A stretch of DNA of 64,000 nt from Setoptus koraiensis (GCA_048013815.1 CM106585.1:9796001-9860000), one strand, 5' to 3'; shown: positions 4,701-54,100, counted from the first letter of the stretch. Notes: a model not told the origin generated them from the letters alone. Program-made: numbers and translations.

Positions 4701-5608
4701 GCTCGTGGTGTGGTTCAGGTTAGTGGTCGTTGATTGCCAAACATCTATCTCGTTGTTACGTAAACAAACGGATAACTTATCTGGGTGGATAAGTCGCCCA
4801 TCGATAGATGGATAGATTGTATCGGGCGAGTCGCTCATGGCGCTGGATGTTGCTTGTTGTCGGGCCGGGCTGTGCGCGCCCCACCGACGGCTACATTATG
4901 GCCATGAGGGCGATACATGAATAATACATCTATAAAAAGCGGGCCAATAATTGTGCCCAAAAAGATAAGAAAGTAAAATTATTGGTGATGAACTAGATAC
5001 AACAATATATATGTGGTTGTTGTTGTTGTTTATCTGCCGGCAATTTATCTCTTTTGTGCCAAGCATAATTGCCATGCAATGCGATGAAATGATGATGCCA
5101 TCCAGCCAGCAGCTAAGCCGGCCACATTTTTGCCAGCTCGTCTGGAAAAAATATTGCCTGTCGCGCTGATTATTGGGTCGCCATTACGTGTTCGCTCTCG
5201 ATGGATATATTCACTTCGAAATGCGGATAAAGATGAAGCGGGCTTGTTTGGGGCTCAGCCAGTCTCAGGCAGTTTCGCGCTCAAGCTGAGCCATGCAATC
5301 AATTGGGCCTTTTGATTGATGCGCTCGGTCGCTCTTGAGGGGAGCCTCTTAGCATCGATTGATGCTGTTCTAGTTTTAACCAGCCAGTTTGTATGCCGAG
5401 ATGTGTGTGTATTTTGCGACGAAAGATAAAGCAACGGGATTCACGCTGTTTACAGGCGCTGCCGATAAATTCCGGCAGGCTTAATGAGATGAGCATATTT
5501 CCATGATGTTGCCAATGATGTTGCCAACAAAACCGGGGCCCGCACTGGTGCCGGCCAGCCAGTCTGAGCAAGTTTGGCAGAGCTAGTTTCGTTTAGTTTT
5601 CCCCTTCA

Positions 5609-29430: not shown

Positions 29431-30369
29431 TTATTCGGTGCAATCAACAATATGTACATCTATTACATCGCCATCTTCAAGTTCAAGCTCGTTGGCAGTT
29501 TGATCATCTTCAACTTGATCGCCGTCGATTTGAAGATGAACACTATGCAAATCTACACCCGCCCTCTCAGCATACAATCGCTTTAATTCGGAAAACGGCT
29601 GATCTTTGAAAATATTAAAAGTGTTGGCCTTCTTAGAACGACCATCTTGCAAAGTAAGCTCCAGTTGATCTGGATGCTTTTGAGGTTGCGAGGATTTATT
29701 GCAGTTGTAATCGCATGCCTCCAATATATCCGTTACGCATAGTTTCAAGGATGCGGGTGTCGCATCAGAAGGCACAAGCTCATCCTTGTGTCGCAATATA
29801 ATTGAATTCACTTGTTTGTTGAGCTTATCAGTGAGATCTTTCAAAGCAACAGCAATACTTGTGTTATATGTCATATCGAATGTGTATATTTTAAAATTGT
29901 AATACATTTTCAATGTGTAACCATAATCTTGGAAGGATGCATCTTGACAGCTTGTATTTAACTCAGATACTGCACTAGAATCATGAATTGATTCTTCGTG
30001 AAGTTCCGACAAGTCGTCAGGCAGCGCAGGAATTGCCTTTTCGTGGGTGGTTATTTCGATAATTGAGGTATCTGAATCGTCCGAGTCCACGAGAGCCTCA
30101 ATGAGATCCTGGTTTATTTCAACCCGATCGACTGCTGGTCGTGAGTCTTGCTGGCTATTTTCACTAGTGGTTTGTTGTGTGCATGTTGTGGACGTCCCTT
30201 TCCTTCCTTTGAATATAATCTCAAGTTCCTCTGCAGAATCATCATCACTGTCCGATTGATTGTAAAGCTTGTTGTTTAATTGGTTGATCTTGTAATCGTA
30301 TATATCAGCTGCGCTATCATCTGCACTGTCATCCGAGGCAACAGAATCACTAGGTTTCATGTTTTGCAT
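29431..30369 (-). CDS. NFATC2IP: NFATC2-interacting protein / Rad60-Esc2-NIP45 (RENi) family, 312 aa
   Basis: Acidic disordered N-terminus followed by two SUMO-like domains; SLD2 ..PFSELKRLYAER..LQIDGDQVEDDQTANELELEDGDVIDV. Confidence 0.85.
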   Translation of the reverse strand: MQNMKPSDSVASDDSADDSAADIYDYKINQLNNKLYNQSDSDDDSAEELEIIFKGRKGTSTTCTQQTTSENSQQDSRPAVDRVEINQDLIEALVDSDDSDTSIIEITTHEKAIPALPDDLSELHEESIHDSSAVSELNTSCQDASFQDYGYTLKMYYNFKIYTFDMTYNTSIAVALKDLTDKLNKQVNSIILRHKDELVPSDATPASLKLCVTDILEACDYNCNKSSQPQKHPDQLELTLQDGRSKKANTFNIFKDQPFSELKRLYAERAGVDLHSVHLQIDGDQVEDDQTANELELEDGDVIDVHIVDCTE

Positions 30370-30956
30370 TTCACTGGATTGTTGTGATTAATAATTGATT
30401 GCCAGTCTTCAAGTTTCATAGGTTTGGGTAGATGAAAATAGATGGAAGAAACAATCAAACTAATATTGAAAAAAAAAACAAAATGATATTCATACGATAT
30501 CATACGCGCACATTGACATGGCGCGTGATACAAATGTTACCAACGAAAATATTTTTGTTTGTAATTATTCTGGGCGGACTTTTCATCCCCATCACCTGAA
30601 ATTGTTTTGAATGTCTAAACAAACCTTACCCCGATTCTTCAGCCGGGGTGAAAAAAGGCAACATGAGGCACAAATAAAAATGGGAATGGAACGATGATCG
30701 GTCACGGGCGCAGATTCGGGTTATCATTTTGGGCTTTCTTCCCAACTACTTTTGTATCTGGCGCCATGAGTCTCGCAGTGCATGTTTTTGCATCATATAA
30801 TCAACGAACAACAATAATAATAATACCTTCTGCACGCTCGAATATTGTTTAGTCATGTGATACTGTGTGGATCTCATTACTTCTTCGCGTCCTTAGCCAA
30901 TAAAATGAAACTTGAAGATGAGCCATTAATCACAACAGCCTAATGAAATATTGAAC

Positions 30957-31559
30957 ATGAAACCCGGTGATTCTATCGCCTCCGGCGACAACAATTCTAG
31001 CACTACCGATATTAATCAATTAAACAGTAAGCCCAGCGATCGACAAGAAAACGATGATGACACCGCTGAGAAACTAGAGAAAATATTCAAAAAGATGAAA
31101 GGCACGTCTGACACATGTACACAACAAGCCGTTAATGAAGGTGGCCAGAATGACTTGCCATCATCCAATGCCTATGATATGTTGGTTGGTAAGATAGCGA
31201 CAAGATTAAATATTGTTTGTCATCCAGATCCCTCTGTTACCCTGAAGGCGATTCGTATGACACTAGAGGAACAGTTGAAACAAAACAATGAGCCAGTCAA
31301 TAGAGAGTTTTCTGTTGCAGCTAAAGGACAAAAAAATAGTTTGGCTAAATTTACAGTGGATGATATAGCATTGCCCGCCTCTAAGGATAGTGATCATGAC
31401 GCTGACCATGCAGCGAAGGTGCTCAAATTACTCTATCTTGATGATTTGAGACTACTTCAGACTCAAGTGAATGAAATAATAGGCTCTGTCCAGAGCATCA
31501 CAACTACCCGACCTCTGATCCATTCTGAGGGCAACAGGGTCAAGAACAGGAACAGCTGA
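30957..31559 (+). CDS. RTRAF: Chimeric RTRAF (CGI-99/C14orf166)-like protein: NIP45-derived N-terminus plus RTRAF C-terminal half, 200 aa
   Basis: C-terminal HPDPSVTLKAIR..L and HAAKVLKLLYLDDLRLLQTQVNEIIGSVQSIT match the RTRAF RLL region (HDDYLVMLKAIR..; EAAQILRLLHIEELRELQTKINEAIVAVQAI). Residues 1-66 are homologous to the neighbouring NIP45 N-terminus. Confidence 0.8.
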   Translation: MKPGDSIASGDNNSSTTDINQLNSKPSDRQENDDDTAEKLEKIFKKMKGTSDTCTQQAVNEGGQNDLPSSNAYDMLVGKIATRLNIVCHPDPSVTLKAIRMTLEEQLKQNNEPVNREFSVAAKGQKNSLAKFTVDDIALPASKDSDHDADHAAKVLKLLYLDDLRLLQTQVNEIIGSVQSITTTRPLIHSEGNRVKNRNS

Positions 31560-42865: not shown

Positions 42866-44689
42866 TTACCGGCGGAAGCGCCTTTTTTTAGCAGCTCCTC
42901 CTCCAGCATTATCTCCGCCGAATGGTCTGTTGAATCTCTGGGGTCTTACTTGACCTCCTGTGTTTATCACCCCCATAGCTTGCGGTGGAGGCGGAGCAAC
43001 GTAATTGGGATTGATGGACATTGCCATCGGTGGGCCAAATTGTTGCGGTACAAATCCAAAAGGATTGCCAGGAGGTCCAGGAGGTCCAGGAGGTTGATGG
43101 TTGACCTGATTATGTTGTTGGTTGATTCCTTGTTGATTAACAATCACCGATTGTATATCAAATGGAGGTCCCTGCGGTTGATGGTTTACCTGGTTGTGCT
43201 GTCCGACTACTGGTCGGTTTACATTTAGTGGATCCATCTCAAATGGAGGGCCTTGATGTTGCTGCAGTTGTTGATTTGCTGGAGGTTGTTCATTAGACAT
43301 CACATGTCTGATACTGCTTTCTCTCTCTTGCCTATCGAGGAGGTCTTGGAGAGCGTTTGCTTGCATTCTCAGTTCACTCTCTTGCTGACGAATACCAAGA
43401 TTGTCACCCATTTGTTGCCGTCGCAGTATTTCATCCTCACGTTGACGAATCAGCATGTCCTCGTGTCGGCGTTGTTCTTCGCGTTGTTGCTCCTCAGCCA
43501 TATGCTTCTCTTGTAGCTTTGTATATCTCTGTTTATCGTCTTCCATTTGTTTTAATTGGGCTCTAAGATTAAGTGTGTCGTGCTCCAATCTAGAGCATTC
43601 GACTTGTTCTTGCAATAAACGCCTGGCTTCCAATATTTCTGCTTCCAGACGCTCACGTTTTTGTTTTTCAATTTCATACAGATCTTTCCACCTAACAGCG
43701 AACGCGTGTTCAAAACTGCCTTGCTCAGCAAAGCGCGGACCTACCTCACGCTCTAGGCGAAATTCTTGAGTGTTTTTATTGATTTTCTTCTCTGGGAACC
43801 CGTCGTCCTCATCCCGTTGATCCATAGGTTCTACCAGGACCGGCTTGGGATTGTTGGTTAGCATAAAGCTCTCTTGTTGGCATCTTTTGATAGCGTACAT
43901 TGCGGAAGTTTTTCGAGAGTACTCAACAATACCCTCTCCCGTGCTACGACCCTTATCATTTGTAATGATGACAGCTCTTTCTATTTCTCCAAAATATCTG
44001 AATGCATATGCCAGCAATTCATTTGTCACTTGTGGGGAAAGATTTTTAACTCTGACAGCAGCGGCATGTGCAGCCAGTCTGACATTCAATGTACGTCCTT
44101 CATATACCATGCAATCCAGAGCTGTTCTAGCCGACTCGGCGCTCTGACGAGTATCCATTTTTATAAATGCGAAGGCCTTCCTAGGTTCAAGAAAGACCTC
44201 ACCTATTTCGCCATGCGGTTCAAATAATTCACGCAAATTCTTTTCAGTAATAGACGTTGGTAGATTGGCCACAAACAGCCTACATCTCCCAGTGAATTTT
44301 TTTTCTGCTACTTTAGTCTCAATGAGTGGTAATTCTAAGGTAGGTGCACCGGGCACGAATTTAATAGCACCAGCGCCAGGTCCAGCGTACTGTGTCCTGC
44401 TGTCAGGAGCATTGTTATTGTTATTATTATTGTTGATATTATTAGAATTTGATCTCCTATCTTGAGAATGGTCCTTGTTACTATAATTACTATTGTTGTT
44501 ATTATTATTGTTATTGTTGTCTCTATGCTGGTGTGGATGATGATGTTGTTGCTGTTGTTGTTGATGGTGCTGTTGATGATGTTGACGTTGGTTATTTTGT
44601 CTCTGATGGTGTTGTTGTTGCTGGTGTTGTTGTTGCTGTTGTTGTTGCTGCTGCTGATTGCTGTCGCCGTTCCCCTTTTGGTTGGCCAT
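42866..44689 (-). CDS. NONO: DBHS-family RNA-binding protein (NONO/SFPQ/nonA/Hrp65-like), intronless, 607 aa
   Basis: RRM1 RLFVANLP..FAFIKM, RRM2 VRVKNLSP.VTNELL..AF..GRSTGEGIVEY, NOPS PVLVEP..D.DDG.PE, coiled coil, C-terminal KKRRF NLS. Confidence 0.95.
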   Translation of the reverse strand: MANQKGNGDSNQQQQQQQQQQHQQQQHHQRQNNQRQHHQQHHQQQQQQHHHPHQHRDNNNNNNNNNSNYSNKDHSQDRRSNSNNINNNNNNNNAPDSRTQYAGPGAGAIKFVPGAPTLELPLIETKVAEKKFTGRCRLFVANLPTSITEKNLRELFEPHGEIGEVFLEPRKAFAFIKMDTRQSAESARTALDCMVYEGRTLNVRLAAHAAAVRVKNLSPQVTNELLAYAFRYFGEIERAVIITNDKGRSTGEGIVEYSRKTSAMYAIKRCQQESFMLTNNPKPVLVEPMDQRDEDDGFPEKKINKNTQEFRLEREVGPRFAEQGSFEHAFAVRWKDLYEIEKQKRERLEAEILEARRLLQEQVECSRLEHDTLNLRAQLKQMEDDKQRYTKLQEKHMAEEQQREEQRRHEDMLIRQREDEILRRQQMGDNLGIRQQESELRMQANALQDLLDRQERESSIRHVMSNEQPPANQQLQQHQGPPFEMDPLNVNRPVVGQHNQVNHQPQGPPFDIQSVIVNQQGINQQHNQVNHQPPGPPGPPGNPFGFVPQQFGPPMAMSINPNYVAPPPPQAMGVINTGGQVRPQRFNRPFGGDNAGGGAAKKRRFRR

Positions 44690-45699: not shown

Positions 45700-47458
45700 G
45701 CTCTCGGCTTATTTAAGACTCGGTGCTGCCAACACTGGGCTGGTGATTATGGAAGTCATTGCTGAAGAACACTCTCAGTGTATGCTTCACAACAAATTTG
45801 TCAACCAGCCGTGCCATTTTTGTCGAATTTTATTTGCATCGATAAACGCATAAACTAGCCCGAGAATTCAAGTGACTCAATCTGTAGAGTTGACAGGTTT
45901 ACCGAGGCACTCTGTGGTCAGTTACGCATTTCAGTGTGTTGACAGCGGCCTTTGGTCAGTCGTTGCCGAACCAAACATGAGTGCACCAGAAAAACCTCAA
46001 ACTGTTATGCGGATTCCCCGGTGCTTGCGTGTCCAAGTTCGCCTCGGTCCTCACAGGGACTTTGATTTCATATATTGTTGCACACTCCACGGACGAAGTT
46101 CTGCGAAATCAACGATGAACACGCATGCAGGCCAGCATTCAATTTTATCGATCGACGTGTGCACTAAAATATTTGAAAGATTTTCAACGTTTGAGAGAAT
46201 TCTACCCCGATCAGCAGAATGTATTAGCGATTGTAAGCGGTGACAACTTTCGACGTCCAGCGAATTGTAGCTTGAGACTCGAGCGGATTATCCCTTGAAA
46301 GTTTCAAGTTGAAACGGATACAAAGTCAGGCTACACAATGCTCCGTCTGGAAACAAGTGATCTCTTTGGCTGTGGCTCTAAAAGCGTCTCACCACTCCAT
46401 GTACCAGACGGACACGTTTGACGATGTCCGGACTCCGGAGCCAGAGCGAATTGTCGGGTTACAGGCTCGTCCAGCCAGAGGCCTGCAAACTGTGGTCGCC
46501 ATGTGTCGCCAGTGGCTATTATTGTGCTCTTGTTGTTGCCAATTAGAGTTGGCGACTTGTCGCTTTGAAACTCGCGCTAGCTTTGGCCCTACTATTCTTT
46601 TGTCCACTTTATGTAAGCGCACAATCATCATTTATATTATGCAGCACACAGCATTTACAGTACTGGGTGTTGCAATCAACTATTGCTCTTTGAACTGTTT
46701 ACGCTGCGCTGCATTATGTACAGAGTGTGTATTCTCACGTGAATATCACCATCCCATTGCAGATGTACAGATGTGTGCATGCTTGGTAGGCTTGCAAACG
46801 CGGCATATTCACGCCGGAGCCGTTGCACAAAGATTTGGCACAGTGTGTGTTTTTGTGCGTAACTGGTTGAGTGCAACACACTAGACAAGACTTGTTGTTT
46901 ATTGCACATTGTAAAAGTTATACGAGCACGCACACGTCTAGGCACGCACACATGCGTACTAGTGATACTGGCGATTGTACAGCTCACACTCACAGACGAG
47001 CGTATATACAGTATTTATACGCCCATGCCTACAGTCGCCTATTCACTTCTCTTCGTCGGATTTTTTCACACACATTTATCGCTCAACAAAATATTTTTTT
47101 TTGTTTTCATTAAATCAGATTGGACAAATACGCAGCCACTAGCTTCTGGAATATCCACCACACACTTACCCTAATTACGTTATCTCAACCTTCGCCAACA
47201 TGAGTGGGCTATCCGACGAAGACAGGAAGGAATTATTGGCCCTCATATTGGGATTCCTGCAGCAATCTTTAAATGATTTTCCCATTGGTATGACGCTTCG
47301 CGATTTTGAGCGAAACTTTCCAGAAAAATGCGATGAACCCGAAGATTGGTACACGCGCTACAATTGTAAAAACGCTGTCGAGGCCCTGCGAACGGTGCCA
47401 GAAGTTGCCAAGCTAACCGTGGGCTATGGAAATCAATTGAAAATTGAGTTAAATACTG
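45700..47458. repeat. Left arm of a large imperfect inverted duplication (partner ~49776-51120)
   Basis: 45784-45924 is identical to the reverse complement of 50891-51031 (141/141). 45925-46370 aligns with 50470-50890, 46900-47110 aligns loosely with 50120-50470, and 47113-47458 aligns with 49776-50120. Confidence 0.95.
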
Positions 47459-49578
47459 CCAGTAAACTACATGACACTCATCTCACCGACATGGTCAAAG
47501 GCCAAAAGGGCAAATCAAAAAAGAGAGCACCCCGAGGTCGACCCTTCTATCCCTGTTCTTTTGGCAACAGGAGACCACCGCAAGGACCATTTAACAGCAG
47601 AAGACCCCCCATGCCGGCGGCATACAATAGCAGGAGACCCACGCCAACATCGAGCGTCAACAGTGCCAATAGATCCACCCAACAGCAAGCCGCCAGCGCA
47701 AACAAATCTGCACCAGAATATTTCAGACCCAAGAATACGCCAGAAGCTCCGAGTATAAGGTCCGCTCCAGAACCGTTCAAACCGAAACCTACGCAAGAGG
47801 CTGCCCCAAGTCACTGGTCTACGCCGCCGGCTTCAAGCACAAAAAACGCGCCAGAAATCGCCAATACGAAACCCGCGCCAGAAGCCGCTGGCGCAAAACC
47901 GGCGCCGGCCTTCAGCACTAAATCCAATCAAGCATTGACCTCAGCACATGCAAGTGCGCATTCACAGATTAAACCGAGCAAATTCGTTTCCGAAAACAGT
48001 ATACGACGCGAAGAGACAACAAATATCCCCAAAAAACCTGCTCCGAAAGCCAGTGTTCAACACAAAGAGTGGCTCAGACAAAAAATAGTTGACTTACTTA
48101 CGCGAATTTCGTCAGAAATAAAGTTAATATTCCTGCCCACCATTTTTCGAACGGAATACGAGGAAACTTTAGATGCCACTGAATACGGCTACTCGCGCAT
48201 TATAGCTTTATTTCAGGACCCTATTCTGAGCAAGGATATTGAAATCAATCACAAGCATCCTTACACCACCATTAGTTCAAGATTGAAATCGAGGCCGGAC
48301 GGAAAAGAGAATAGGATCAACGGATCATCAGCGAATTCAACTAAAACATTTTTATCATCCAACCATCACGAGTCTCTTGATAGTTTATCTCAAGACACTG
48401 GAATAGAATCACCTTTTGAGGCTATTGATCCATTCAACCTGAAAAGTATGCAGCAAAGCCTACAGAAATCTTCTGTTCCTATCAAGGAAAAGAAGAAAAA
48501 CATCATCCCTATTGATGATGAAATTAAGTACAAAACCTTCCGAATGATCATGACCAGTGACACTCCATTAGAAATCGATAACTGGCAAAATAAGTTTGAA
48601 TATGAAACCAAGCTCAACATAAGAGTGAGCTACTATGGCTTCACTAATTGTGAAGACTTCTTCAAAGAGTTGGTCAAAGATATGCCCATCAAAATTGAGA
48701 GAAATAACGAAGGCCGCTCGATCGCTTCTTTGACATCCCCAGACGATTTAAAATTATGGTTATACGCTAAAATGGCCAAAAATGAATATAAATCAATTTA
48801 TGTTTTAAGTGATAAGTATGAATTGATAGCAAATCCCAAAGATCGATTCACTTTCAGGAGAATTGGACAGGAAATGTTGGATTCAGGTTACTATCCGGTA
48901 GCATTATGTTCAGCGAAGAATCCTTCTCATATCTGGTTGAAAATGCATAATGAACGATTCTACGAGGATCTTAGTTTCATAGAAACTACAATGTGCGCAT
49001 ACCAAGATTATACCGATTATAATGCTAAAACTAAGTCCTCCATGTTACCAGGTTTGCCTATATTCTTTTTTAGACAAGGACTACCATGCTCCGTTTATGA
49101 CCAGCACGTCAACAAGTGGTGCCGTGCTATAATCGTGTCCATCGTGGGATCTGTACCACAGACTAATCAAGAAATCGACAATCTCAAAGTGAATCTTTTA
49201 CTAGTGGACTACGGTTTAGAAAGAAAAAATATACCAGTGAAACAAATACATTGCCTTCTCAAAGACCATATGAGAACACCAATCGTTCCAATCCGGTGCC
49301 ATCTAGACGGTGTAAGGCCCGTATTTGATGAGCAAAGTGATGTTCCAGGCGAGTGGAGTGGAAAAGCAAAAGTTATTCTACAGGAATACGTCAACCCTCC
49401 GTCCATACTAGCTTGTAAATTTATCAACGAAAAGAACGACCAAGATGGAACTTCAAATGATACTCATTTACCGGTAACTAGTTGGGGAGTGGAACTATGT
49501 GATACCCGTGGTGACGAGGATTGTTTCCTCCATTCTTCATTGATTGAGGCTGGATTAGCTGAAAGTATTAATCACTAA
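47200..49578 (+). CDS. TDRD5: TDRD5/tejas-like piRNA-pathway protein (three LOTUS domains plus one extended Tudor), intronless, 792 aa
   Basis: LOTUS-like units at the N-terminus (..GMTLRDFE..C.NAVEAL..VPEV), at LRQKIVDLL..EYGYSRIIALF and at IKYK..SYYGFTNCEDFF; Tudor-SN region HIWLKM..KWCRAII..LVDYG..PIRCHLDGVRP..WS. Confidence 0.8.
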   Translation: MSGLSDEDRKELLALILGFLQQSLNDFPIGMTLRDFERNFPEKCDEPEDWYTRYNCKNAVEALRTVPEVAKLTVGYGNQLKIELNTASKLHDTHLTDMVKGQKGKSKKRAPRGRPFYPCSFGNRRPPQGPFNSRRPPMPAAYNSRRPTPTSSVNSANRSTQQQAASANKSAPEYFRPKNTPEAPSIRSAPEPFKPKPTQEAAPSHWSTPPASSTKNAPEIANTKPAPEAAGAKPAPAFSTKSNQALTSAHASAHSQIKPSKFVSENSIRREETTNIPKKPAPKASVQHKEWLRQKIVDLLTRISSEIKLIFLPTIFRTEYEETLDATEYGYSRIIALFQDPILSKDIEINHKHPYTTISSRLKSRPDGKENRINGSSANSTKTFLSSNHHESLDSLSQDTGIESPFEAIDPFNLKSMQQSLQKSSVPIKEKKKNIIPIDDEIKYKTFRMIMTSDTPLEIDNWQNKFEYETKLNIRVSYYGFTNCEDFFKELVKDMPIKIERNNEGRSIASLTSPDDLKLWLYAKMAKNEYKSIYVLSDKYELIANPKDRFTFRRIGQEMLDSGYYPVALCSAKNPSHIWLKMHNERFYEDLSFIETTMCAYQDYTDYNAKTKSSMLPGLPIFFFRQGLPCSVYDQHVNKWCRAIIVSIVGSVPQTNQEIDNLKVNLLLVDYGLERKNIPVKQIHCLLKDHMRTPIVPIRCHLDGVRPVFDEQSDVPGEWSGKAKVILQEYVNPPSILACKFINEKNDQDGTSNDTHLPVTSWGVELCDTRGDEDCFLHSSLIEAGLAESINH

Positions 49579-49745
49579 TCTGCTAAAATTCGGTTAACAA
49601 TTGTTCTTTTCTGTGAAATCGATAAGCAATCGTTACATTTGTTAAATAAAGAAATGTATACATAATCATAAGTACTCAATGTATCACGACGAACTATGAT
49701 CTGTCTTTTACCTTTTTAATTCATTTAGCACAGAAGGCCTGAATG

Positions 49746-50033
49746 CTAATAACCGTGGGCTAATAACCTGGATTGAGTGTTTAACTCAATTTTTATTCGT
49801 CCCTCATAGCCCACGGTTAGCTTAGCAACTTCTGGCACCATTCTTAGTGCCTCGACAGTGTTGCTACAATTGTAGCGCGTGTACCAATCTTCGGGTTCAT
49901 CGCATTTTTCTGGAAAGTTTCCCTCAAAATCGCGAAGCGTCATACCAATGGGAAAATCATTTAAAGATTGCTGCAGAAATCCCAATATGAGGGCCAATAA
50001 TTCCTTCCTGTCTTCGTCGGATAGCCCACTCAT
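49746..50033 (-). CDS. LOTUS-domain-only mini-gene (inverted partial duplicate of TDRD5 5' end), 95 aa
   Basis: First 86 codons align with TDRD5 codons 1-86 without indels or stops; novel 9-aa tail and stop; ATTAAA on the minus strand at 49720-49715; conserved 5'UTR. Could be an unexpressed pseudogene. Confidence 0.6.
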   Translation of the reverse strand: MSGLSDEDRKELLALILGFLQQSLNDFPIGMTLRDFEGNFPEKCDEPEDWYTRYNCSNTVEALRMVPEVAKLTVGYEGRIKIELNTQSRLLAHGY

Positions 50034-51120
50034 GTTGGCGAAGGTTGAGATAACGTAATAAGTTTAAGTGTGTGGTGGATATTCCAGAAGCTAGTGGCTG
50101 CGTATTTGTCCAATCTGATCTGTAGCAGAACAATATTTCGTTATGTGAGATCTGTTTGCGATAAAATCCAACGGAGATAAAGATGCACATTCGTAACTTC
50201 CCTACAATCTGAAAACTTCTGAAGTTATTTATTACTAGTGGGCAGTAAGGGCGATAAGGGCAGTAAGTGGTGAGGGAGTGATGGGAGAATACGGGAGACC
50301 CGGGTGAACCATGCTGTGTTCTCCCGTGTTCTCCCATGACTCCCTCACCACTTACTGCCCTTATCGCCCTTACTGCCCGAACACTATTTATTACATAATA
50401 TTCGGTCGTCTGTGAGTGTGATCTGTATTGGCTCGCGCGCGCCTAAACGTACTCGTACAAACTTGCAGTGTGCGAAGAGATCACTTGTTTTCAGAAGCAG
50501 CATGGTGTAGCCTGACTTTGTATCCGTTTCAATTTGAAACTTTCAGGGGATAATTGGCACGCTTCACTCGAGTTTCACATGCTACAACTCGCTGAATGTC
50601 GAAAGTTGTCACCGCTAATCCAGACTGCTGATCGGGGTAGCAATCGTATGTGAATCCTCTCAAACGTTGGGGATCATTCAAATATTTCAGTGCATACGTC
50701 GATCGATAAAATTGAATGCTGGCCTGCATGCGTGTTCATCGTTGATTTCGTCCGTTGAGGGTGCGACAATATATGACATCAGAGTCTCTGTGAGGACCGA
50801 GGCAAACTTGAACACGAAAGCACTGGTGAATCCGCATAACAGTTCGAGGTTTTTCTGGTGCACTCAAGTTTGTTTCAGCAACGATCGATCTAACTGACCA
50901 CAGAGTGCCTCGGTAAACCTGTCAACTCTACAGATTGAGTCACTTGAATTCTCGGGCTAGTTTATGCGTTTATCGATGCAAATAAAATTCGACAAAAATG
51001 GCACGGCTGGTTGACAAATTTGTTGTGAAGCCTACACTATGGGTGTTCTTCATCATTGACTTCCATAATCACCACCAACACAGTGTTGGCAACGCTCCGT
51101 CGAAAAGAAGTCGAGAGCTG
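49776..51120. repeat. Right arm of the large imperfect inverted duplication (partner ~45700-47458)
   Basis: Reverse-complement alignment to the left arm as described; carries a MITE and lacks ~530 bp present in the left arm (46370-46900). Confidence 0.95.
50236..50386. mobile_element. hAT-type MITE / foldback element, 151 bp
   Basis: Exact 8-bp target-site duplication TTTATTAC (50228-50235 and 50387-50394); termini TAGT(GTTC)GGGCAGTAAGGG, with the left end lacking 4 nt; 59-bp internal arms (50240-50298 and 50320-50378) with only 2 mismatches around a 21-nt loop. 8-bp TSD and TAG terminus are typical of hAT. Confidence 0.85.
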
Positions 51121-54100
51121 TCGTTCGCCTTCTCAATTCAAATAGCCCAGTAGCTTAGATGCTCTTAGCTGGCGTGGGAAGACATTAAATGGCCTGAGTC
51201 GATGGTGGCAATTTTAAGCTGAAACAATGTGGCTGGACACTCTCTCATTGGATGAATATATGCCCTTATTTATCTCTTCTCCATTAGTCTAATGACAATA
51301 AGGTGAATAGACATTTCATTCGAGTACCATTCACCTTTTGTGCACTGCATGCTCTTCCGAGTCAATGTCCTGAATTAGGCACAATGCGATAGAACAAGTT
51401 TGCACTTGATCTATTTCATCAGCGGTGTATACTTTTTCATTTTTTTTTCTATGAATATTTTTATAAAAGTATATATATTTATACATAAGCCAATACTCTT
51501 GAATAATTGGGCGGTGATACAAAGAAGGAATGAGTATCGATTAGCGGCTTCAACATTTGGGTTGCGGCAACAGATAGGCGGGCATAATTCCACCAAGATA
51601 ATCCGTCTACGGAGGTTTGTTTACGATACAGAGACTATAAAAAATTAAATATCACCATGATTTAGCGAATACATGATACACTTGCCATGGTAGTAATGAG
51701 AGTTATTCGCAGAAATCATAAATCGTTTTTGTATTCTATCCTCGTAGAATTGTTGTCACACAAGTACATTGTATTAATATAACTCCGCGAGTTCATTCAA
51801 AGGAATATATCTACATATTTTTATTGATCGTGACACCCTCAATTCGCCAATATCAAAAAACTATTGAATATAGAACATGATGTCGTTGAATTGACATTCA
51901 ATACATTCACATGACTTCACCTCCGAGGCGTGTTGGCGATTCATTGAGTGAACATGAAGCCAAGAACAGCAACCCATTGCAATTTGTCGACCTCTAGGAT
52001 TCAATAAAATGCATTTCTTTCTGAGCCCAATAAATACAAGGTCTTTTTTTTAGGAATCAAAACACGGAACCTTAAAGCTAATTGTGGATGTATGATCATC
52101 AAATAATTGGCAGGCACGACATTGTGTGTGTAAACGACAACTCTTCTGTTATCAGCTTAATATCTCTGACACAACTGAGATATAATACTATTATTTTAAA
52201 CCTTGATGCTAATGGAGCCTGTAAAAGCTAACGGCAATAATATCGACACTCATGCAACGCTACGGCAACAAACGCCGCAATAGTAACAACAAGAGCAACA
52301 ACGTTGGCATTGATCACGGCCAAACGATATCAGCTGATTGAGATTTGTATCACAGATAGTGCACTGAATTATTGCATATCATGTGCATTTGTCAGGTGTA
52401 AGCGAATGTCATTGATTGATGCCAGCATCAATGTTGGCAAACTTGGCAAGCGATACGGTCATGAGACACAGCAACAACAACAACACCACCACCACCAACA
52501 ACAACAACAACAACACCAACGACACCAACAACGACATCAACAACGACACCAACAACAGCGGGCCAGTCTTGTCCTTGTTTATAAATTATTTACATGCAAT
52601 ACATGCTGTTGTTATTACGATTCCCTAAGCTCACACTTCATGATGGGTCAAATACGGAGATAGTATAGCACCACTGCAACTGTTCCATGTACCGTATGGT
52701 TCCAGTGAAGCCGGCACTGTGATTGTTAGCATTGCGAAATAGAGGAATAAGCTAGCTTATTGTGGGCCATCGACTGAACTATATGTATTCAGCTAAACAG
52801 TGGCAGCGACAGCAGCAGCAACGACAACAACAACAACAAGTGGAAGACTAACGAACCACCTCGACACATATTGAGATTATCCAGCAAACAAGCTAGTCAA
52901 GCAGCCGACTAACGAACATTTTTTGCCTTGCCAAAATAATAGCCACTTTTGTTGCTGCAACTATCACTCATAGTAATTGACTGATAGATAGCTTAATTCT
53001 TCAACTAAACAAGCAGCCAACTTTTACTTCTCACTGTGTCTCAATTTTTGTCTCACTACGGCATATCCGATATATTGGGAGGACTAACAGTAACTCAGCC
53101 TAACTAATGCAAAAACAACCGTGAGCAACAATGGCAAGCGGATGAAAGAATGCAAGGAACTCACAACTCTACACATCACCACGTTATCTACCTATCAATC
53201 GAGAACTTCACATAAAGCTAATGAAAACAATGACAACAACAGCAACAGCAGCAACATCGGCAACAACATTACAGTAAACAACGTATACAACTAGGTTAAA
53301 CAACAATCGTTGTTAATGTGCAGCGACTGGAGGCAAAACTATCGGCACCTACCCACGGATGTCTTTAGAAGCAACTATCACTAATAGACCACAACCAAAG
53401 CTGTTAAATCCTAGTTGAGCCCAGTGATACCACCATAAGCACTATAAGCACTATCAACACTACCAGTTCCAGACACGGCTAAAACAGACGCTCCTATTAG
53501 CAATTCAAAATCGACCAACAACAATATTCCTGATTGAATTTTGTCAGATATGAGTCGACAATAGTGTCACACACTTGTCACAATCTGTGGTATCAGTTGT
53601 CGACGACGGCGACAATCAATTAATAATCATTTCGCTTCAACAACAAAGAAGAACTCCGGCAACAGCAAGCCGACAAATTTGCATAGCAGCCATTCGAGCG
53701 CGATCGAATCTACGAACGCTCAGCCATCTAGAGTGCCATACCAACACGCTATTACTTTTTTACTCATCTTTGGGTGCCATACATCATGCTGATCATCATT
53801 ACCAGACTAACGATATTTTAGGCTTTTTAGTATGTAATGAATCTAAATATCATCATCACGAAGCATCAGTAGCAGTGTTTGAGTGACAGTAGTCAAGTTA
53901 TCACCGTACAACTTTTTAGCAACCATGTAACAAGTGCATTATCGATCCAACGACCAGTTAAGTCAATAAAACAAGTGAAAACAGCAACAACCATTAGTCC
54001 AAACAAGCTAAACGATAAGCGAGGGGAAGAATAACGCGCCAAGAAGGCGATTATTTTCTCATCTAATTAATAGTCTACTAACTAGTTAGTGTTGTCATTA

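Follow-up and report, generated by a model that had tools for sequence, protein, structure and literature searches.

A TDRD5/Tejas-like gene of the gall mite Setoptus koraiensis is flanked by an inverted copy of its own 5′ end, and this copy carries a short open reading frame. The question raised by this locus is whether the copy acts on Vasa or on its parent gene, or whether it is a remnant of a duplication. Our analysis of the window, meaning the whole 64-kb stretch of DNA that was examined, favours the second answer: the copy is probably a gene relic under neutral evolution that could at best count as a proto-gene, and it is unlikely to regulate either Vasa or the parent. This reading is the most likely one because the copy lacks the piece that known LOTUS domains need for Vasa binding. 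The features are listed in Table 1.

Repeat search and blastn located the gene-scale inverted duplication that an earlier note had placed beside the 3′ end of the parent. Its arms (45700-47457 on the plus strand and 51118-49776 on the minus strand) match in three inverted, collinear segments: 45700-45924 with 51118-50891 (92% identity), 45960-46366 with 50884-50475 (83%, gaps counted) and 47114-47457 with 50119-49776 (94% over 344 nt). The claimed duplicated length of about 1.75 kb holds for the left arm, which spans 1.76 kb, and not for the right arm, which spans 1.34 kb because about 560 bp of the proximal upstream region of the parent (46366-46978) are missing from the copy. Parts of 46656-46923 are conserved with a syntenic contig of a sister species (L001), and the missing stretch is therefore a deletion in the copy. 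In addition, the copy contains a palindromic MITE-like insert of 139 bp. Contigs of runs X2 and X4 have loose ends at 50246 and 50372, which point to other copies of this insert elsewhere in the genome. Rfam gave only sub-threshold, miRNA-like matches to its hairpin, and a tRNA scan found no tRNA. Repeat behaviour was confined to this palindrome inside the copy, and no further copies of the arm sequences were found within the window. The arms were rejected as a dispersed transposable element, as the window holds only two copies, X2 depth on the most alike arm stretches is at most about twice the single-copy level and the segments are collinear.

Amplified or long-read libraries can yield artefactual inverted duplications that adjoin their source, and the copy might accordingly be a fold-back chimera of long reads or the result of two joined haplotypes. 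We regard this as extremely improbable. Artefact arms would be identical, whereas the arms observed here differ by 2-35% and by the deletion of about 560 bp and the MITE insertion. Both junctions are bridged without differences by contigs from runs of other samples, the inner one by X2 and X4 contigs (47741/47734-49894, 0 differences) and the outer one by an X4 contig (50451-51387). Run X2 is DNA-like with even depth, X7 and X8 are RNA-like and X4 is of unspecified kind; all contigs are unstranded. Summed X2 contig depth, a crude measure, was about 224-325 on the two most alike arm stretches compared to about 125-150 in the single-copy surroundings, which fits two real copies. An assembly artefact, which the earlier note had named as a possible refutation, is thus ruled out by the diverged arms and by independent contigs across the junctions. 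Presence in related species had also been proposed as a check. The syntenic contig L001 does not carry the copy, 251 bp replacing positions 49666-51287 of the window, and the copy is therefore lineage-specific.

Table 1. Coordinates of the features at the duplicated locus (positions in the window)
Feature	Position	Strand	Remarks
Left arm, non-coding (parent 5′ flank)	45700-47113	+	45700-46366 common to copy; 46366-46978 absent from copy; 47045-47113 about 65% alike
Near-identical tract (5′UTR and codons 1-56)	47114-47367	+	98.0% (249/254) identical to copy; probable recent gene-conversion tract
Parent gene	47200-49578	+	Intronless ORF, 792 aa, TDRD5/Tejas-like
Unduplicated part of domain	47458-47544	+	Parent codons 87-115: S88/D92 motif, predicted helix 93-103 (alpha5, extended LOTUS), basic tail KGKSKKRAPRGR
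Spacer, parent stop to right arm	49579-49775		67.5% A+T; the two poly(A) signals and the last 9 mini-ORF codons lie here
Parent poly(A) signal AATAAA	49645-49650	+	Sequence motif
ATTAAA of copy	49720-49715	-	26 nt 3′ of mini-ORF stop
Mini-ORF	49746-50033	-	95 aa: predicted LOTUS winged-helix core (codons 1-86, duplicated), 9 unrelated codons, TAG
Right arm (inverted copy)	49776-51118	-	Absent from sister species
Palindromic MITE-like insert	50240-50378		TAATAAATA flanks both sides; at the equivalent of the parent transcript start

By its sequence the parent appears to be TDRD5-like, with one extended Tudor domain behind its LOTUS domain(s); the assignment to TDRD5 over TDRD7/Tapas or other LOTUS-Tudor proteins is by architecture only. 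The extended LOTUS domain occupies residues 1-103; a P/S-rich, disordered linker follows, then come LOTUS-like stretches around 290-340 and 440-510, and the Tudor domain covers 566-704. As in TDRD5 and Drosophila Tejas, an N-terminal extended LOTUS domain and more LOTUS-like regions are combined with one Tudor domain. The claim of a TDRD5/tejas-like parent is borne out by its aligned relatives, 12 of 13 of which carry TUDOR and 11 of 13 OST-HTH, and by a distant match to a scorpion protein (Centruroides 'tudor domain-containing protein 5-like', E 1.2e-5). Named relatives are only distant, and the other match is an uncharacterised Tetranychus protein (E 8.5e-7). In contrast to TDRD5/Tejas, the parent family is narrow, with 25 representatives among 1.8 billion, and very divergent. 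The first LOTUS domain goes undetected by Pfam, and the Pfam TUDOR score of the parent at 566-704 is 22.9 bits, just below the cut-off of 23. OST-HTH is weak in the parent, at 290-339. Exact look-ups of the parent and mini-protein sequences returned no match. The L001 orthologue is 70% identical, the 3′UTR is conserved with L001 to about 49666, and RNA-like contigs of X7 and X8 cover the parent at 47022-49577.

To the N-terminal domain, a sequence-profile search against the PDB gave chance matches only, and LOTUS structures were not reached by sequence profiles. In AF2 models, parent residues 1-115 and the mini-protein share the core elements of the winged helix-turn-helix LOTUS fold with pLDDT of about 80, and the core of the mini-protein is modelled confidently (about 80-89). 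Consistent with the LOTUS identity claimed before, the top Foldseek matches were the LOTUS structures of TDRD7 (3rco), Tejas (8wxs), TDRD5 (3s93) and Oskar (5a49/5nt7), with a probability of 1.00, target-normalised TM-scores of up to 0.80 and weak E-values (3.5e-3 at best). The chain from the Oskar LOTUS-Vasa complex, 5nt7_A, aligns with the parent domain over 95 columns. Both the parent domain and the mini-protein are thus predicted to fold as LOTUS domains.

The mini-protein ends with the core. Its stop was said to coincide with the LOTUS boundary; this is correct for the minimal core, and the extended LOTUS domain of the parent continues past codon 86, where the duplication ends. The C-terminal extension (alpha5) is absent from the mini-protein, whose residues 88-95 are unrelated to the parent and modelled as disordered (pLDDT <50). 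Helix 93-103 is predicted in the parent only, at a low pLDDT of about 58. D92 and Q102 are invariant in the parent family and S88 is nearly so, and all three lie beyond the breakpoint. The same applies to the basic unstructured tail that follows alpha5 in the parent (KGKSKKRAPRGR; family consensus QKxSxKKRR), as its KKR tail is missing from the mini-protein. Oskar LOTUS without the C-terminal extension does not bind Vasa (PMC5458760), and the basic tail is required for Vasa stimulation (bioRxiv 10.64898/2026.03.28.715021). By analogy, the mini-protein would correspond to the 'LOTUS deltaC' construct of Oskar (aa 139-222), stopping just before the extension, and the parent, in which a helix is predicted and a motif conserved at this point, to the extended LOTUS (139-240) (Jeske et al. 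2017, PMC5458760). Unlike deltaC, the mite ORF is natural and not an engineered truncation, and the mite sequences are only about 15-21% identical to Oskar and Tejas LOTUS domains. No Vasa gene lies within the 64-kb window. The suggestion that the copy is a Vasa activator or a dominant-negative decoy is not supported, given the loss of helix 93-103, D92, Q102 and the basic tail. Activities besides Vasa binding have been reported for LOTUS cores, among them dimerisation in some Oskar proteins.

The claim of an intact ORF of 95 codons with its own ATTAAA was correct on both counts; in the AT-rich spacer, a chance match to this motif is plausible. The copy holds 86 of the 792 parent codons with no stop or frameshift among them, 80 of 90 residues are identical to the parent protein, and none of the six core residues that are invariant in the family (G30, F36, F40, E46, W50 and L63) has changed. 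This intactness is not evidence of selection, since at the observed number of substitutions an ORF would stay free of stops with a chance of 0.43-0.52 and since most of the ORF, about two thirds, lies inside the 98% conversion-like tract. Identity to the copy falls to 73/90 (81%) in 47368-47457. The change point at 47369 was reached by 0 of 5000 permutations (p<0.0002), and UTR and synonymous sites are likewise conserved within the high-identity tract. Sex-chromosome and segmental palindromes undergo arm-to-arm gene conversion, and they too have inverted arms with near-identical tracts beside diverged ones. The arms here differ in being tiny (1.3-1.8 kb) and in holding a gene fragment instead of whole genes. 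The mosaic identity probably reflects gene conversion between the arms, and the copy ORF would look pristine because its 5′UTR and first 56 codons were recently re-homogenised.

Outside the tract, the arm segments differ by 17-35%. Codon changes polarised to the copy branch comprise 5 non-synonymous and 2 synonymous ones, compared to 2 and 2 on the parent branch, and thus the copy branch gives no sign of purifying selection. The promoter region of the copy is degraded, with about 560 bp of conserved proximal promoter deleted and the MITE at the equivalent of the transcript start. In view of these two findings, the idea of a self-tuning module of germline small-RNA defence is not supported. Against the reading as a neutral relic, the unconverted coding segment differs at 17/90 nt between copy and parent and at 20/90 between the two orthologues, by which measure the copy has been kept through a considerable part of the period after the sister-species split. 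The undisrupted codons with their invariant core residues, a copy-specific contig in the RNA-like run X7 and the other activities reported for LOTUS cores weigh on the same side, as does the possibility that conversion is itself favoured in case the product has a role.

It might be that the mini-protein is translated and acts in germ granules with no need of the C-terminal extension, by pairing with LOTUS domains of the parent, by binding G-rich RNA (reported for LOTUS cores in PMC7498356) or by competing for a partner other than Vasa. The intact ORF with its invariant core residues, the confidently modelled core and a probable transcript in X7 argue for this. So do short ORFs of two other species that comprise the N-terminal domain alone (P0019, 99 aa; P0020, 125 aa); these may be true genes or first exons, and they retain the extension. 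Word-based protein searches with the mini-protein and the N-domain alignment found nothing, and these blanks weigh little, as the latter search missed even the known P0019 and P0020. On the other hand, the elements for Vasa binding and stimulation are missing, the copy-branch substitutions look unconstrained, such an ORF survives by chance about half the time, the promoter is degraded and the sister species has no copy. We therefore consider a functional mini-protein unlikely.

Weak transcription of the copy locus is probable. The RNA-like run X7 contains an unstranded, copy-specific contig of 266 nt (49757-50022) whose depth resembles that of the parent. A chimeric gene with the copy as its first exon was rejected, as there is no sizeable minus-strand ORF downstream and the X7 contig reads through a possible breakpoint donor.

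It had further been proposed that convergent transcription of the near-identical sequences could yield dsRNA. In that form the proposal is wrong: both transcripts carry the repeat in sense, and complementarity therefore needs read-through, in which the parent transcript would extend into the copy or the copy transcript would run antisense over the parent. On a single strand the two arms are complementary to each other. A duplex with the parent 5′ end, spanning 344 nt at 94% (254 nt of them at 98%), could serve as a source of small RNAs that modulate the TDRD5-like gene. The parent AATAAA is only about 125 nt from the copy, and the X2 and X4 contigs run unbroken over 47734/47741-49894, X2 being DNA-like and X4 of unspecified kind. 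A precedent is given in two studies, which describe as established that Drosophila hpRNA loci, hairpins producing endo-siRNAs, arise from inverted duplicates of their targets (PMC10317233, PMC10292708). Like these loci as described there, the mite locus has part of a germline gene duplicated in cis and inverted, with arms that could form long dsRNA; in contrast to them, the complete parent gene lies between its arms, and it is known from sequence and unstranded contigs. However, X7/X8 coverage ends at the parent stop codon and is followed by a gap of 179 nt before the copy-specific contig, and the loop of the hairpin would be the entire coding region of 2.3 kb. Moreover, no clear homologues of AGO2 and R2D2 turned up in the eriophyoid Aculops lycopersici (PMC7738191). 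An effect at the RNA level is hence unlikely. A functional feedback of the palindrome on its germ-granule gene, whether by read-through small RNAs or by a Vasa-independent deltaC LOTUS interaction in granule assembly, seems very unlikely.

With a functional mini-ORF or hairpin, the locus would be a natural experiment on a LOTUS core without its Vasa-binding extension, and a rare example of an inverted duplicate that regulates its source gene in the small-RNA pathway. The RNA version would represent an hpRNA-like locus outside insects with a small-RNA-pathway gene as target; under the protein version, the eLOTUS-only ORFs of two other mite-like species would hint at recurring free LOTUS proteins in the clade.

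The relic reading fits a copy that is a fragment and specific to one lineage. We infer that about 1.75 kb of 5′ flank, 5′UTR and the first 86 codons were copied in reverse orientation, most likely by a fold-back or template-switch replication error, and inserted about 110 bp past the parent poly(A) site. The copy would then have decayed by promoter loss, MITE gain and divergence, until arm-to-arm gene conversion restored its coding start. The present value of the locus is more modest: a well-resolved, datable local inverted duplication of a 5′ end in a miniaturised mite genome, in which gene conversion can give a decaying fragment the look of an intact gene. A second inverted 5′-end duplicate lies in the same window at 29431-31559 (39/73 aa). 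It likewise consists of a flipped promoter and the first codons of a gene, adjoining its source. The TDRD5-like copy differs from this class in that it is a solitary short ORF and, at least so far, no other gene has been joined to it.

Next to the TDRD5-like gene (the parent) there is a genuine inverted partial duplicate of it (the copy), specific to this lineage. An ORF scan of the window returned one long reading frame for the parent and a short one (the mini-ORF) in the copy; their products share 89% identity across the first 90 residues. Repeat finding and blastn connected the two arms through three collinear inverted matches, and a global arm alignment located the upstream parts of the parent that are missing or poorly matched in the copy. 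The promoter of the copy is degraded. A palindromic insert within the copy can be regarded as a dispersed MITE-like element, because its edges are where contigs of two sequencing runs, X2 and X4, diverge. Its matches to several miRNA precursor models were all sub-threshold and probably reflect a generic hairpin effect. At the inner breakpoint lies a short tandem duplication, from which the mini-ORF draws its final codons and its TAG. The same window contains a divergent ORF pair with similar N-termini and therefore holds two inverted 5′-end duplications within 64 kb.

Coordinates of the features (window positions)
Feature	Position	Details
Parent ORF	47200-49578 (+)	792 codons, intronless
Mini-ORF of the copy	50033-49746 (-)	95 codons
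Inverted match 1	45700-45924 with 51118-50891	92%
Inverted match 2	45960-46366 with 50884-50475	83% with gaps
Inverted match 3	47114-47457 with 50119-49776	94%
Proximal upstream region of parent	46366-46978	~560 bp missing from copy
Parent flank	47045-47113	only ~65% alike in copy
5′UTR and codons 1-56	47114-47367	249/254 identical, 98.0%
Rest of inverted match 3	past 47367, to 47457	73/90 identical, 81.1%
Distal stretch	45752-45924	173 bp, 96.5% identical; neighbours 79-90%
Palindromic MITE-like insert	50240-50378	139 bp, near-perfect palindrome inside copy, TAATAAATA on each side
Parent AATAAA	49645-49650 (+)	
Copy ATTAAA	49720-49715 (-)	
Tandem duplication	49745-49775	13-14 bp, exactly at inner breakpoint; GCTAATAACCGTGG / GCTAATAACCTGG on + strand
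Divergent ORF pair	29431-30369 (-) and 30951-31559 (+)	39/73 N-terminal residues in common, E 3e-18
DBHS-type upstream neighbour	42866-44689 (-)	two RRMs and NOPS domain
Conserved non-coding block	51340-51420	~80 nt; L001 about 5495-5575; ~95% identity with sister species

For practical purposes, the assembly or haplotype artefact that the earlier note had named as a refutation can be excluded. The substitutions, indels, deletion and transposon insertion that separate the arms are not what a fold-back read chimera would produce. In addition, the inner junction is bridged with zero differences by X2 and X4 contigs (47741/47734 to 49894) and the outer junction by an X4 contig (50451-51387). X2 resembles DNA sequencing, as genic and intergenic parts are covered at even depth. 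Where the arms are most alike, its summed depth reaches as much as about twice the single-copy value, which is what two copies should give.

The sole close relative of the parent protein (P0001, 70% identity) is encoded on L001, a 6.5-kb contig of a sister species from another run. Synteny with L001 holds on both sides and extends from the end of the NONO/NonA-like gene upstream to a conserved block at window 51287-51523. It carries 251 bp in place of window 49666-51287, and no inverted repeat of its own was found on the 6.5-kb contig. Since the copy is absent despite this synteny, it represents a lineage-specific insertion; its loss in the sister lineage would be less parsimonious. In codons 57-86, the unconverted coding segment, copy and parent differ at 17/90 nucleotides and the two orthologues at 20/90. 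The duplication is therefore not very recent; as a rough estimate, it perhaps took place about midway between the species split and today. The upstream neighbour is of DBHS type (NonA/NONO/PSF-like), and its N-terminus carries poly-Q/H and poly-N tracts that are very long. On the other side, a short non-coding block is highly similar to the sister species within an ORF-free, otherwise poorly alignable intergenic region. It has no Rfam match; candidate identities are a UTR, an enhancer and an unrecognised small RNA.

Along 47114-47457, identity between the arms is strongly uneven. A change point was placed at 47369 and was reached by 0/5000 permutations. Conservation extends to the UTR and to synonymous sites as well as replacement sites, so recent arm-to-arm gene conversion explains this pattern better than purifying selection. 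In simulations at the observed substitution number, the ORF stayed stop-free in 43-52% of trials. When the differences were polarised with L001, the copy branch received five non-synonymous codons (R38G and a clustered 8-nt change over codons 77-80) and two synonymous ones, and the parent branch two of each, with three codons ambiguous. Small as these numbers are, they give no indication that the copy is under constraint.

To the parent protein, an exhaustive HMMER search (E<=0.001, 1.8 billion proteins) assigned only 25 representatives, mostly proteins of 670-790 aa from run assemblies. By this measure its LOTUS-Tudor family is extremely narrow and, given the distance to the sister orthologue, fast-evolving. 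The named distant relatives, from Tetranychus and Centruroides, are arachnid proteins, consistent with a mite. Among 13 aligned full-length members, Pfam detected TUDOR in 12 and OST-HTH/LOTUS in 11. The window protein itself reaches 22.9 bits for TUDOR (cut-off 23) at 566-704 and has a weak OST-HTH match at 290-339, which is not N-terminal; its N-terminal domain was not recognised by sequence methods. Residues 1-115, modelled with AlphaFold2 (pLDDT 79.8), fold into helices at 6-23, 33-43, 50-54 and 59-65, followed by two strands (70-74, 80-84) and a final helix at 93-103. The best PDB matches in Foldseek are LOTUS structures: human TDRD7 (3rco, TM 0.77-0.80 by target), Drosophila Tejas (8wxs), Oskar in complex with Vasa (5nt7_A, 95 aligned columns) and TDRD5 (3s93). 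Together with TUDOR and OST-HTH in the relatives, these matches uphold the earlier labels 'TDRD5/Tejas-like' and 'LOTUS'. In the model, the conserved S88...D92...Q102 motif forms a helix and is followed by the basic tail KGKSKKRAPRGR (family consensus QKxSxKKRR). Core, motif and tail together mark the modelled first domain as an extended LOTUS (eLOTUS). Two short ORFs from other species, P0019 (99 aa, L002:1014-1313) and P0020 (125 aa, L003:98-475), consist of an N-terminal eLOTUS only and retain its C-terminal helix region. Beyond the stop of each, over 400 bp of AT-rich sequence show no further family homology. Independent eLOTUS-only genes, first exons and truncated pseudogenes are all possible readings.

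In the copy, homology to the parent stops at codon 86 and is followed by nine unrelated codons and TAG. The model of the 95-aa protein keeps the entire LOTUS core, with the same structure matches as the parent domain, and all six family-invariant core residues are retained. The final helix is absent, and residues 88-95 are modelled as disordered. Jeske et al. 2017 (PMC5458760) found that Vasa binding is lost when Oskar LOTUS is cut back to aa 139-222, removing the C-terminal extension, and that it requires both alpha2 and alpha5. According to a 2026 preprint of the same group, the basic stretch after alpha5 is not required for binding and is essential to stimulate Vasa (bioRxiv 10.64898/2026.03.28.715021). 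The mini-protein had been proposed as a Vasa activator or a decoy; because of these published requirements it should, by homology, be neither, as C-terminal extension and basic tail are missing. A functional role of the putative 95-aa product appears quite unlikely. We lean towards the copy being a neutral gene relic or proto-gene, one of many products of this genome's mutational habit. It encodes a LOTUS core devoid of the Vasa-binding extension, and gene conversion probably helps to keep it looking fresh.

Low-level transcription of the copy is probable. Contigs of the runs X7 and X8 (different organism label, 98-100% identical) are restricted to 47022-49577, except for one X7 contig of 266 nt at 49757-50022, and none of them continues into unlike sequence. 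This pattern points to RNA rather than DNA. The 266-nt contig differs from the window copy at one site and spans about 17 copy-versus-parent diagnostic sites plus 19 nt unique to the copy, so that the copy region is probably present in RNA. Its depth of 4 is of the same order as that of the parent (2.5-9.6). The RNA could be the mini-gene's own transcript or parent read-through. No X8 contig covers the copy region. The single difference (49922) restores Arg38, and the Gly allele occurs on parent-like X4 and X8 contigs. Alleles of codons 38 (Arg/Gly) and 19 were seen on the 'wrong' paralogue in X4, X7 and X8 contigs (window 47256, 47311, 49922), reflecting either ongoing gene conversion or exchange, a polymorphism shared by the two arms, or an assembler that switched phase.

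The ATTAAA ascribed to the copy is present, and the two poly(A) signals place the predicted 3′ ends some 30 nt from each other, without overlap. The idea that convergent near-identical transcripts yield dsRNA fails as stated: the copy is inverted, so its minus-strand transcript carries the repeat in sense, and the two RNAs are alike and not complementary. Complementarity would arise by only two read-through routes. Parent transcription about 125 nt beyond the AATAAA would enter the copy, and the 3′ end of the RNA would pair with its own 5′ end; alternatively, the copy transcript would extend antisense into the parent. PMC7738191 reports piRNA factors for the eriophyoid Aculops lycopersici and found no clear homologues of AGO2 or R2D2. 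A read-through duplex between the arms acting at the RNA level is unlikely; its closest known analogue is the Drosophila hpRNA class (PMC10317233, PMC10292708).
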